The translations under genes were made by a program, and so were the position numbers. A model generated the notes under the pieces. It had not been told where the DNA came from and did no database searches. It saw nothing but the letters and a program-made list of their open reading frames with translations. Positions 1-6,000 of a stretch of 64,000 bases of DNA are shown here, one piece after another (position 1 is the first letter of the stretch; each line of letters starts with the position of its first letter). Source of the stretch: Macrostomum lignano (taxonomy: Eukaryota); assembly GCA_002269645.1 (NCBI GenBank), contig NIVC01001680.1, positions 124,001-188,000 of the forward strand, written 5' to 3'.

Positions 1-3000
1 ATTGGCGCGTTCGTGCTCATCAAGATGAAGGAGACTGCCGGTGCGTCATAACTGCTTTGGCCTAAAATCTTAACCTAGACTAGAGAGCATCAGCAGTAGC
101 ATTGGGCAGGCATAATCAGGAGTGTCATTTTTCAGAGCAGACTTCTTAAATTCTTTCTCTTCCAATTCGAGAGCTTCAGTTGTCCTTGACCATTTATTCC
201 ACTTGCCGCACGCTAAGGATGACAGCTAACTTACACGTACTTGCGACGCCATATATTTGCATATCGTTGGCGAATGACGCAAGTTGAACTCTCTCACTGA
301 GGCTGTGCAGACCCTGTCTAGGCAGCTCAGCTTTCATCCCTAAGATTTATTATTTTCTAAAGCCGGCAGTCTTGCTGTCATTCGCATTGCAGAAAGCTAT
401 CTCGGCACCTCAGTGAAGAACGCTGTGATCACCGTGCCAGCCTACTTTAATGATTCTCAGCGCCAGGTAAGTCTATCAGTAATTTTGCTTTCCATACTAC
501 TTGCAGCCGTATAATCAAATATGATGCTTTCATATTTTTCGTCGCTCAGGCCACAAACTGGCCAATGATGAACTAACCATTGTGACTGATGCCCATCCAC
601 CAGCCCCTGTACAGCGCTACACAGCCTTGCACCACGGCTTGCGTGTGCATCTCCCCGCCCCTCACCCTCCAACTCTAGGCCACGAAGGACGCCGGCCAGA
701 TCGCCGGCCTGAACTGCCTGCGCGTCATCAACGAGCCCACAGCTGCCGCGCTGGCCTACGGCATGGACAAAACCGAGGACAAGATCATCGCCGTGTACGA
801 CCTGGGCGGCGGCACCTTCGACATTTCCATTCTGGAGATTCAAAAGGGCGTGTTCGAAGTCAAGTCCACCAACGGCGACACCTTCTTGGGCGGCGAGGAT
901 TTCGACAACGCCCTGTTGCGCTTCTTGTCGGCTGAGTTCAAGCGCGATGTGAGTTGGAGATTCCCGAACTTCTCATCTGCGTGCTTCTCTTAGCACAGGG
1001 AACAACCAGACTTCTCTGTCGCAATAAGTTTCAGGCCTTTCAGCTTCATGTGCAACATCTGAGGCTCTGAAGTTGATGTGTTGACAGTTTAGTGCAAAAA
1101 TTAAAACTTCCACTCTCATAGATATTTTATTAGTTAAACAAGTGCTGCATCCTGAGACTGCGGTAACTTGTGTGACTTCTAGTTGGCCCTTCGCCCTTGT
1201 TTTAGTGCCTTGTTTAGAAGCATTTGATCCCTCAGTATCGCTGACTTCCGATAGTAATTGTTGAATCGCGAATTTCATTTACCCGCGCTTCTGCTTTCGT
1301 GTTAATTAAACAAGTAATTTTTTCAGTGGGACTGTTCATCTTGGCAACGAATCCACATAGCAACTGTATAGCTTTCTTAGAAACCGGCAGCCAATGGGCA
1401 GAAGTCCACATAGCAACTGTATAGCTTTCTTAGAAACCGGCAGCCAATGGGCAGAAGTCCACATAGCAACTGTATAGATTTCTTAGAAACCGGCAGCCAA
1501 TGAGCAGAAGTCCACATAGCAACTGTATAGATTTCTTAGAAACCGGCAGCCAATGGGCAGAAGTCCACATAGCAACTGTATAGCTTTCTTAGAAACCGGC
1601 AGCCAATGAGCAGAAGTCCACATAGAAACTGTATAGCTTTCTTAGAAACCGGCAGCCAATGAGCAGAAGTCCACATAGAAACTGTATAGCTTTCTTAGAA
1701 ACCGGCAGCCAATGAGCAGAAGTCCACATAGAAACTGTATAGCTTTCTTAGAAACCGGCAGCCAATGAGCAGAAGTCCACATAGAAACTGTATAGCTTTC
1801 TTAGAAACCGGCAGCCAATGAGCAGAAGTCCACATAGCAACTGTATAGATTTCTTAGAAACCGGCAGCCAATGGGCAGAAGTCCACATAGCAACTGTATA
1901 GCTTTCTTAGAAACCGGCAGCCAATGAGCAGAAGTCCACATAGAAACTGTATAGCTTTCTTAGAAACCGGCAGCCAATGAGCAGAAGTCCACATAGAAAC
2001 TGTATAGCTTTCTTAGAAACCGGCAGCCAATGAGCAGAAGTCCACATAGAAACTGTATAGCTTTCTTAGAAACCGGCAGCCAATGAGCAGAAGTCCACAT
2101 AGAAACTGTATAGCTTTCTTAGAAACCGGCAGCCAATGAGCAGAAGTCCACATAGAAACTGTATAGCTTTCTTAGAAACCGGCAGCCAATGAGCAGAAGT
2201 CCACATAGAAACTGTATAGCTTTCTTAGAAACCGGCAGCCAATGAGCAGAAGTCCACATAGAAACTGTATAGCTTTCTTAGAAACCGGCAGCCAATGGGC
2301 AGAAGTCCACATAGCAACTGTATAGCTTTCTTAGAAACCGGCAGCCAATGAGCAGAAGTCCACATAGAAACTGTATAGCTTTCTTAGAAACCGGCAGCCA
2401 ATGAGCAGAAGTCCACATAGAAACTGTATAGCTTTCTTAGAAACCGGCAGCCAATGAGCAGAAGTCCACATAGCAACTGTATAGATTTCTTAGAAACCGG
2501 CAGCCAATGGGCAGAAGTCCACATAGCAACTGTATAGCTTTCTTAGAAACCGGCAGCCAATGAGCAGAAGTCCACATAGAAACTGTATAGCTTTCTTAGA
2601 AACCGGCAGCCAATGAGCAGAAGTCCACATAGAAACTGTATAGCTTTCTTAGAAACCGGCAGCCAATGAGCAGAAGTCCACATAGAAACTGTATAGCTTT
2701 CTTAGAAACCGGCAGCCAATGAGCAGAAGTCCACATAGAAACTGTATAGCTTTCTTAGAAACCGGCAGCCAATGAGCAGAAGTCCACATAGAAACTGTAT
2801 AGCTTTCTTAGAAACCGGCAGCCAATGGGCAGAAGTCCACATAGCAACTGTATAGCTTTCTTAGAAACCGGCAGCCAATGAGCAGAAGTCCACATAGAAA
2901 CTGTATAGCTTTCTTAGAAACCGGCAGCCAATGAGCAGAAGTCCACATAGAAACTGTATAGCTTTCTTAGAAACCGGCAGCCAATGAGCAGAAGTCCACA

Positions 3001-6000
3001 TAGCAACTGTATAGATTTCTTAGAAACCGGCAGCCAATGGGCAGAAGTCCACATAGCAACTGTATAGCTTTCTTAGAAACCGGCAGCCAATGAGCAGAAG
3101 TCCACATAGAAACTGTATAGCTTTCTTAGAAACCGGCAGCCAATGAGCAGAAGTCCACATAGAAACTGTATAGCTTTCTTAGAAACCGGCAGCCAATGAG
3201 CAGAAGTCCACATAGAAACTGTATAGCTTTCTTAGAAACCGGCAGCCAATGAGCAGAAGTCCACATAGAAACTGTATAGCTTTCTTAGAAACCGGCAGCC
3301 AATGAGCAGAAGTCCACATAGCAACTGTATAGATTTCTTAGAAACCGGCAGCCAATGGGCAGAAGTCCACATAGCAACTGTATAGCTTTCTTAGAAACCG
3401 GCAGCCAATGAGCAGAAGTCCACATAGAAACTGTATAGCTTTCTTAGAAACCGGCAGCCAATGAGCAGAAGTCCACATAGAAACTGTATAGCTTTCTTAG
3501 AAACCGGCAGCCAATGGGCAGAAGTCCACATAGCAACTGTATAGCTTTCTTAGAAACCGGCAGCCAATGAGCAGAAGTCCACATAGAAACTGTATAGCTT
3601 TCTTAGAAACCGGCAGCCAATGAGCAGAAGTCCACATAGAAACTGTATAGCTTTCTTAGAAACCGGCAGCCAATGAGCAGAAGTCCACATAGCAACTGTA
3701 TAGATTTCTTAGAAACCGGCAGCCAATGGGCAGAAGTCCACATAGCAACTGTATAGCTTTCTTAGAAACCGGCAGCCAATGAGCAGAAGTCCACATAGAA
3801 ACTGTATAGCTTTCTTAGAAACCGGCAGCCAATGAGCAGAAGTCCACATAGAAACTGTATAGCTTTCTTAGAAACCGGCAGCCAATGAGCAGAAGTCCAC
3901 ATAGAAACTGTATAGCTTTCTTAGAAACCGGCAGCCAATGAGCAGAAGTCCACATAGAAACTGTATAGCTTTCTTAGAAACCGGCAGCCAATGAGCAGAA
4001 GTCCACATAGCAACTGTATAGATTTCTTAGAAACCGGCAGCCAATGGGCAGAAGTCCACATAGCAACTGTATAGCTTTCTTAGAAACCGGCAGCCAATGA
4101 GCAGAAGTCCACATAGAAACTGTATAGCTTTCTTAGAAACCGGCAGCCAATGAGCAGAAGTCCACATAGAAACTGTATAGCTTTCTTAGAAACCGGCAGC
4201 CAATGAGCAGAAGTCCACATAGAAACTGTATAGCTTTCTTAGAAACCGGCAGCCAATGAGCAGAAGTCCACATAGAAACTGTATAGCTTTCTTAGAAACC
4301 GGCAGCCAATGAGCAGAAGTCCACATAGAAACTGTATAGCTTTCTTAGAAACCGGCAGCCAATGAGCAGAAGTCCACATAGAAACTGTATAGCTTTCTTA
4401 GAAACCGGCAGCCAATGAGCAGAGGTCCACATAGAAACTGTATAGCTTTCTTAGAAACCGGCAGCCAATGAGCAGAGGTCCACATAGCAACTGTATAGCT
4501 TTCTTAGAAACCGGCAGCCAATGAGCAGAGGTCCACATAGCAACTGTATAGCTTTCTTAGAAACCGGCAGCCAATGAGCAGACGTCCACATAGCAACTGT
4601 ATAGATTTCTTAGAAACCGGCAGCCAATGAGCAGAGGTCCACATAGCAACTGTATAGCTTTCTTAGAAACCGGCAGCCAATGAGCAGACGTGATGTTATC
4701 AATACATTTTTCGTCGCTCAGGCCGGAAGCCAAAAAACTTTTCGGTCAGTGATGAGCAACATCTGCGCTGATCTGCTTGTCCAGCTGCCGTCCTTTCCAT
4801 ATCCATATTTGCATTTGTATGCATGATGACAGCTAATTCTCAAGTCCGAGACAATCTGTGCGGACAATCAATTTGACGAACTCTCTCTCTGAACTTGTTC
4901 TTTTATAATTTAGCTAATCATGCCTACTAACTATATTGCCTAGTTGCTAAGGAACTCCGAACTCCTTCATAATCCCCAGACCGGCATCGACATCACCAAG
5001 GACAACATGGCCCTGCAGCGGCTGCGCGAGGCGGCCGAGAAGGCCAAGATTGAGCTGTCTTCGTCGCTGCAGACCGACATCAACCTGCCCTACCTCACCA
5101 TGGACGCCAGCGGCCCGAAGCACATGAACCTCAAGCTGTCCCGCTCCAAGTTCGAGAGCCTGGTTGACGACCTGATCAAGCGGACGATGGCGCCCTGCGA
5201 GAAGGCCATGAAGGACGCCGAGGTGAAGAAGTCCGACATCGGCGACGTGCTGCTGGTGGGCGGCATGACCCGCATGCCGAAGGTGCAGTCCACCGTCCAG
5301 GACATGTTTGGCCGCCAGCCAAGCAAGTCTGTCAACCCGGATGAGGCTGTGGCCATTGGAGCCGCTATTCAGGTGCGCAGATTTGCGGCAGAATTCCCCT
5401 ATGCCACAATAATACACTGACATCCGTGATGACACAATACACAACCTGAATAAAGCCACCCTTTATTCTGCTGTAATCTTTGAACTCTCTCACTGAGGAT
5501 GTGCCTTCTTCAGCAATCCCTCATTGCTTATTAATTAGCAGTCCGCCTGACCGAGCCTTTGCCCAAACCATCGTCTCTGCAGGGCGGCGTTCTCGCTGGC
5601 GACGTGACCGACGTCCTGCTGCTGGACGTGACGCCCCTGTCGCTGGGCATCGAGACCCTCGGCGGCGTCTTCACCCGCCTGATCGGCCGCAACACCACCA
5701 TCCCGACCAAGAAGTCGCAGGTGTTCTCCACCGCCGCTGACGGCCAGACCCAGGTCGAGATCAAGGTGCACCAGGGCGAGCGGGAGATGGCCGCCGACAA
5801 CAAACTGCTGGGCCAGTTCAGCCTTGTGGGCATCCCGCCCGCCCCGCGCGGAGTGCCGCAGATCGAGGTGAATTTATTTTCTTTGACTAGAGTTCTCACC
5901 CTGACTCCATCAGATCCTCCACCTCTCACCCTGACTCCATCAGATCCTCCACCTCTCACCCTGACTCCATCAGATCCTCCACCTCTCACCCTGACTCCAT

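Follow-up and report, generated by a model that had tools for sequence, protein, structure and literature searches.

The analysed stretch, here referred to as the window, comprises 64,000 nucleotides (64 kb) of the Macrostomum lignano contig NIVC01001680.1 (positions 124,001 to 188,000). Its beginning carries, on the + strand, the 3′ two-thirds of an orthologue of the mitochondrial Hsp70 gene HSPA9/Hsc70-5 (1..6846), recognised by protein similarity. The exons of this gene lie at about 1-40, 392-466, 679-948, 4980-5372, 5583-5867 and 6313-6846, the last one ending with the stop codon; the boundaries of intron 1 and intron 5 were set by reading the sequence. Exon translations were 82-92% identical to animal proteins named "stress-70 protein, mitochondrial" or "Hsc70-5", and the matches of two HSPA9 fragments at this identity were a mixture of arthropods, fish and flatworms. 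Two candidate small nucleolar RNAs (snoRNAs) of the box C/D class, here referred to as copy A and copy B, were identified on the sense strand of consecutive introns of this gene, the first in intron 2 (467-678) and the second in intron 3 (949-4979). A preliminary description of the window had already proposed an element duplicated in two HSPA9 introns, and these are the introns concerned.

Copy A (516..594, with approximate ends, + strand, as for all snoRNA features below) has the full layout of a box C/D snoRNA. Its C box, ATGATGC (521..527), matches RUGAUGA except at position 7 and is followed by the guide TATTTTTCGTCG (533..544), which pairs with U514-A525 of 18S rRNA in human numbering. 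The proposed D′ box, CTCA (545..548), matches CUGA at three of its four positions and adjoins an internal hairpin, GGCC-acaaact-GGCC (549..563, with arms at 549-552 and 560-563), on the far side of which lie AA and TGATGA. This hairpin folds with −8.1 kcal/mol (z = −2.4). It is followed by a perfect C′ box, ATGATGA (565..571), a second spacer of 14 nt, or D guide, ACTAACCATTGTGA (572..585), and the D box CTGA (586..589), the end of which is 89 nt away from the 3′ splice site.

Copy B occupies 4680..4780 when its extended terminal stem is included, and its mature RNA probably corresponds to ~4684-4776. The terminal stem consists of 5 bp between GCAGA (4684-4688) and TCTGC (4772-4776), and can be extended to 9 bp (4680-4688 with 4772-4780). 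Between its arms we found the C box GTGATGT (4690..4696), the guide ATTTTTCGTCG (4706..4716), the same proposed D′ box CTCA as in copy A (4717..4720), an adjoining hairpin (4721..4747), a perfect C′ box GTGATGA (4749..4755), a second spacer (D guide) of 12 nt, GCAACATCTGCG (4756..4767), and the D box CTGA (4768..4771), with 208 nt between its end and the 3′ splice site. In the hairpin, the arm GGCCGGAAG pairs with the arm CUUUUCGGUC around a loop that is unlike that of copy A and 12 nt longer.

The order C box, guide, degenerate D′, hairpin, perfect C′, second spacer and D box is common to both copies, and agrees with the C-like box, hairpin, perfect C′ box and CTGA that the preliminary description had listed. 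The terminal boxes, a 5′-proximal RUGAUGA and a 3′-proximal CUGA, are present in both, with position 7 of the C box as the sole deviation, and so are the internal boxes, of which C′ is perfect and D′ (CUCA) degenerate, as D′ boxes commonly are. The identity between the copies, first noticed as a 13-nt element at 534 and 4706 followed by CAGGCC, extends to the exact 19-mer ATTTTTCGTCGCTCAGGCC at 534-552 and 4706-4724, which is found nowhere else in the window. The 13-mer itself, ATTTTTCGTCGCT (534-546 and 4706-4718), occurred only twice when up to two mismatches were allowed; such recurrence is not rare per se, as it was equalled in 24 of 100 shuffles. The whole layout, searched on both strands of the 64 kb as [AG]TGATG-N25-60-TGATGA-N9-18-CTGA, gave exactly two matches, which are copies A and B, while 200 block shuffles gave 0.025 matches on average and never as many as two. 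Judged by these sequence features, copies A and B very probably belong to the known box C/D snoRNA class.

The guide is complementary to the animal 18S rRNA segment AGUGACGAAAAAU, with which it pairs over 13-14 bp at about −17 kcal/mol. This segment was taken from the published universal 18S primer GGTAGTGACGAAAAATAACAATACAGGAC and is an animal segment, not the host's own 18S; human numbering was fixed by U514, C517 and a fly/human conservation table (A512 G513 U514 G515 A516 C517 G518 A519). The duplex of copy A comprises 14 bp at −17.6 kcal/mol, against −6.8 ± 2.2 in shuffles, and that of copy B 13 bp at −16.3 kcal/mol; in neither case was any of 1000 shuffles as good. Up to CUCA the antisense element forms 11-12 bp (13-14 bp with the CU of the box), and it is thus complementary to rRNA over at least 10 nt. 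One G.U pair is present, at U514, and a host 18S reading AGCGACGAAAAAU rather than AGUGACGAAAAAU would render the guide fully Watson-Crick. The preliminary description had placed a conserved 5′ (D′) guide opposite the 18S segment that contains human Cm517, the site of the vertebrate snoRNA SNORD56; the primer, the U at position 514 of human 18S, C517 as the SNORD56 site and the 13-14 bp duplex all bear this out. As for the second spacers, no target was found for that of copy A or copy B, and no fly snoRNA carries either of them.

In the folds of minimum energy, the guide is paired by its 3′ part, UUCGUCGCU, with the C′ box of the same RNA, AGUGAUGA (539-571 and 4711-4755), owing to the likeness of the 18S target AGUGACGA to a C box. 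This predicted self-pairing may be a folding artefact or a self-masking structure.

The base to be methylated depends on where the D′ box is read, which had been described as ambiguous between CTCA, TCAG and CAGG, with a site that may differ from the human one. This ambiguity is real, and the three readings, compared by the standard C/D kink-turn pairing scheme, favour the first. CUCA agrees with CUGA at three of four positions (C1, U2 and A4 are retained), keeps three of four kink-turn contacts with C′ (G.A, U.U and G-C), and makes G518 the fifth paired base; the fifth bases upstream of CTCA are C540 in copy A, which pairs with G518, and C4712 in copy B. UCAG agrees at none of four positions, keeps 0-1 contacts and points to C517, whereas CAGG agrees at two, keeps two contacts, would open the hairpin and points to A516. 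Moreover, CUCA borders immediately on the conserved hairpin, on the far side of which two bases precede UGAUGA; this is the same geometry as that of the terminal C/D motif of copy B. Mutagenesis of the D′ box of yeast snR48 has shown that its 3′ A is essential and that its 5′ C sets the modified site. It is most likely that CUCA is the D′ box and that the methyl group would be placed on the G (human G518, Drosophila G475) and not on the SNORD56 cytosine.

A guide of this register is known from Drosophila. In the fly rRNA methylation map, Am469 (human A512) and Gm475 are present and C474 is unmethylated. The supplementary table of the map equates fly 474 with human C517, which is Cm in human, Xenopus and Arabidopsis, and fly Gm475 with human G518, which is unmodified in human; Gm475 is only partially methylated in the fly. 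The guide for fly 18S-Gm475 is FBgn0263851 (snoRNA:CD-24, with the proposed name CD68), hosted by RpS3A and with the sequence UUUAAUAUGAUGUUGUUAUUUUUCGUCUCUGUCAUUUAUGAUGAAAGCUAAAGUGCUGAA. A whole-length MAFFT alignment of CD68 with the two copies was misaligned owing to the difference in length, and a box-anchored alignment of the 5′ halves was used instead, in which ATTTTTCGTC-N-CT is invariant. CD68 and both copies share the guide core AUUUUUCGUC-N-CU in the same register, and with this common core, one free base and a D′ box starting with CU, the fifth paired base is the same G in all three.

The likeness includes the deviations from consensus. The D′ box is degenerate in all three (CUGU in CD68, CUCA in the copies), and the C box has a base other than A at position 7 in each (AUGAUGU in CD68, AUGAUGC in copy A, GUGAUGU in copy B). 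All have the guide in the 5′ half, a perfect C′ box (AUGAUGA or GUGAUGA) and the D box CUGA, and all are intronic in a housekeeping protein-coding gene. The host gene, on the other hand, is RpS3A in the fly and HSPA9 here. CD68 is 60 nt long, lacks a hairpin and has only 5 nt separating D′ from C′, whereas the copies are ~75-95 nt long with a hairpin of 4-9 bp. The fly guide also reaches further 5′ (UGUUAUUUUUCGUC), the D spacers are unlike, and there are two copies here, unlike the case of CD68. Descent of CD68 and copies A and B from a common ancestor is plausible, and the copies are probably homologues of CD68. Most likely they are its functional counterparts rather than those of SNORD56, and the simplest reading is that they are probably CD68-type guides for the G beside the SNORD56 cytosine.

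From the anatomy, rarity, complementarity and fly-guide register described above, we infer expression, small nucleolar ribonucleoprotein (snoRNP) assembly and the modified base as follows. Copies A and B would be paralogous intron-encoded box C/D snoRNA genes, transcribed within the HSPA9 pre-mRNA, from the spliced introns of which the snoRNAs would be trimmed out and assembled with Snu13, Nop56, Nop58 and fibrillarin. The 5′ guide (U)AUUUUUCGUCG would pair with 18S rRNA at UGACGAAAAAU(A), and fibrillarin at the C′/D′ motif would methylate, at its 2′-OH, the rRNA base that pairs with the fifth base of the guide upstream of D′. With D′ at CUCA (545-548 and 4717-4720), the predicted target is the G just after the SNORD56 cytosine. 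That the copies are real 18S-guiding box C/D snoRNAs we hold with high confidence. Granted this, the G is the probable modified base, and for the two propositions taken together our confidence is moderate.

Several points weigh against this interpretation. Cm517 is found in human, Xenopus and Arabidopsis and may thus be ancestral, which would raise the prior for the cytosine as the site. The D′ box has a C where the G of the sheared A.G pair of the kink-turn belongs, both C boxes deviate at position 7, and G544 pairs with U514 as a wobble, or by Watson-Crick pairing if the host 18S has a C there. In copy A the terminal stem amounts to at most 1 bp beside the boxes, and copy B is poorly placed in its intron, with another snoRNA-like element between it and the 3′ splice site. 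The evidence for conservation consists of two paralogues and one distant fly sequence, and the likeness to CD68 beyond the boxes and the guide is too short to prove common descent.

The first of these points leads to the alternative, in our view unlikely, that the copies are true SNORD56 equivalents with D′ read one base later (UCAG, 546-549 in copy A), in which case the fifth paired base would be the equivalent of C517. Vertebrate SNORD56 (U56) guides human 18S-Cm517 with its 5′ half (nt 19-29), and its D′ register is here deduced from this published guide position alone, not from its sequence. Human SNORD56 is hosted by NOP56. Like copies A and B it is an intronic box C/D snoRNA that pairs with the 18S segment around U514-A522 by its 5′ (D′) guide; methylation of the cytosine is, besides the three organisms named above, said to be conserved in most eukaryotes except yeast, and with the later register all 13 complementary bases would fall outside the box. 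However, SNORD56 targets the adjoining cytosine, and the register that the copies would need for it is not a credible D′: UCAG has no position in common with CUGA, lacks the essential 3′ A and takes the first base of the hairpin. The fly guide of the same CGUC-N-CU register goes with Gm475, in an rRNA whose C474 is unmethylated. Furthermore, no Rfam match was obtained for the whole window at the gathering score, and no match to SNORD56 even at E ≤ 10 in 1-1300 or 4600-5000. The "U56-like" label of the preliminary description is not upheld by these results as a family name; it suits the target region, but is probably mistaken about the family and, by one base, about the site. Permissive Rfam searches gave sR9, SCARNA18 and SNORD95 (E 1.7-4.9), which we discarded as weak generic C/D matches.

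The placement of the copies within the host gene bears on whether they would be processed. HSPA9 holds five C/D-like elements in four consecutive introns, namely copies A and B and three further elements, here called family 1, at 218-310, 4818-4895 and 5425-5500 (introns 1, 3 and 4, + strand). In four of the five, the distance from the end of the D box to the 3′ splice site is uniform, at 91, 89, 87 and 86 nt (297-391, 586-678, 4889-4979 and 5493-5582), and copy B, the exception, is the only one with a 9-bp terminal stem. An intronic snoRNA position suited to splicing-coupled processing is about 70-90 nt before the 3′ splice site. In mammals, the assembly of intronic snoRNAs takes place during splicing where their spacing is optimal, whereas those with bad spacing rely on flanking stems. 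The pattern of spacing and stems among the five elements fits what would be expected of real intronic snoRNAs.

Comparison of the two copies with each other confirmed the earlier remark that the rest of the sequence has diverged. Identity is 9/14 in the 5′ flank, 5/7 in the C box, 4/6 plus 3 gaps in the spacer between C box and guide, 19/19 in the guide, D′ and stem, 7/12 plus a 12-nt indel in the loop region, 6/7 in the C′ box and 3/14 in the D spacer. At the background identity of ~60%, a run of 19/19 has a chance of ~6e-5, as estimated from the paralogue alignment. As the copies have diverged outside the boxes and the guide, selection on the guide is indicated, and it is to this that the paralogue comparison points.

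One may ask instead whether one or both of the copies are duplicates in decay, from which stable snoRNAs are not processed any more, with the identity of the 19-mer due to gene conversion or a recent duplication and not to selection. In favour of this, a terminal stem is missing from copy A, whose C box is AUGAUGC; copy B, at 208 nt from the 3′ splice site, has another snoRNA downstream of it and a tandem array of 3.3 kb beside it; and the D spacers are unconserved. We nevertheless consider decay decidedly unlikely, since all four boxes are retained in both copies while flanks, loop and D spacer have diverged, and the low chance estimated for the 19/19 run also speaks against it. Each copy also has the compensating feature to be expected from its position, copy A having optimal spacing and copy B a long stem, and a conversion tract confined to exactly the guide, D′ and stem would be a coincidence.

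It is very improbable, in our estimate, that CUCAGG adopts two C′/D′ structures and that the adjacent C and G are both methylated, or are methylated partially. A precedent exists in yeast U18, snR48 and snR13, in which a target region can receive two modifications under the guidance of non-consensus C′/D′ motifs and which share with copies A and B a non-consensus D′ beside a good C′ box; the yeast guides, however, act on 25S sites where two modifications were demonstrated, while copies A and B are known here from sequence. The identity of the whole CUCAGGCC stretch between otherwise diverged copies and the partial methylation of fly Gm475 would suit such a dual site. On the other side, UCAG and CAGG would be very poor as boxes, a single site is seen in the fly, and the conservation of GGCC is accounted for by the hairpin stem.

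A related proposal, which we regard as rather unlikely, is that the SNORD56-type Cm517 guides of vertebrates and plants and the CD68-type Gm475 guide belong to a single ancient family, that the methyl group was moved between adjacent bases when a degenerate D′ slipped by one base, and that the CUCAGG version is an intermediate that methylates both bases or either of them partially. A scan of metagenomes with the pattern TGATG-N4-16-ATTTTTCGTCRCT-N8-38-TGATGA returned 16 loci, all chance-like, none with a credible D box and stem; most of them appear to lie in bacterial coding sequence on GC-rich contigs.

A chance resemblance, or an intronic repeat or regulatory element other than a snoRNA, is scarcely credible: about 10 13-mers complementary to some part of rRNA are expected in 64 kb by estimate, and the window is extremely repeat-rich, but the layout and duplex statistics, the match to a known fly guide and the three other snoRNA-like elements of the same gene all speak against it.

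Conservation of the guide in orthologous introns had been proposed as a check, and it did not bring support: the guides of the copies and of family 1 were absent from the three HSPA9 loci fetched, from a beetle (L002), a cockroach (L003) and another eukaryote (L001), none of which is a close relative. The nearest of them, L001, has no introns at the positions of copies A and B. Two short inverted repeats were also seen within the gene, one between the sequences after the first family-1 element and after copy A (300-310 and 617-627, 11 nt, 91%) and one between the end of exon 1 and the end of intron 1 (32-41 and 363-372, 10 nt, 100%). Both may be due to chance.

The D guide of family 1, GAACTCTCTC(A/T)CTGA, equals the guide in the Rfam consensus of SNORD81, to which weak Rfam matches were obtained (E 4.5 and 0.76). 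Human 28S Am391, which is the site of SNORD81, is listed for human and Xenopus only and is absent in fly. The first family-1 element seems to be partly duplicated internally, with GATGACAGCTAA at ~229-240 and a degenerate second C-box region at ~265-279.

Most of intron 3 is occupied by 63 units of a 53-bp tandem repeat (98% identity, 1352-4688, + strand), which ends exactly at copy B. The 3′ end of the unit, GGCAGCCAATGAGCAGAAG, equals the 5′ flank and 5′ stem arm of copy B (GAGCAGACG), and is similar, too, to what precedes copy A (GCAGCCGTATAATCAAAT). It seems that the upstream flank of the snoRNA gave rise to the array.

The tandem-repeat load of the window as a whole is extreme, with 70 rows reported by TRF. 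It includes kb-long tetranucleotide arrays, (TGTC)n, (ACTA)n, (CTGT)n, (TCTA)n and (TGCC)n, and many minisatellites of 12-62 bp, with examples at 17231-18467, 19515-23289, 27556-28672, 36787-37925 and 52844-53361. Exons in the window are very GC3-rich. A single-exon open reading frame (ORF) of 584 aa (57402-59153, + strand) matches the Pfam family ASC (amiloride-sensitive sodium channel, E 3e-31); in a large protein collection it was not on record and found no match at E ≤ 1e-5. Two ORFs on the − strand, 8239-9054 and 12156-12572, resemble retrotransposon fragments, possibly non-LTR: the first combines an RNase H domain (Pfam, E 6e-9) with a cysteine motif at its C terminus, and the second has a related cysteine motif. 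Leucine-rich repeat (LRR) exons (~10469-12095) and a tetraspanin exon (55752-56108, − strand) were noted along with these retrotransposon-like ORFs.

If our reading of copies A and B is true, two unannotated guides of 18S methylation would be added to the genome of an animal in which Rfam leaves the snoRNAs unrecognised, and HSPA9 would be a host of multiple snoRNAs, with its five elements in four consecutive introns. The practical importance of this is modest. Drosophila would also be joined by a second lineage with the methyl group of the 18S UGACG segment probably on the G and not on the cytosine used by vertebrates and plants, and the question of whether sites of rRNA modification can drift by one base through the slip of a degenerate D′ box would become testable.

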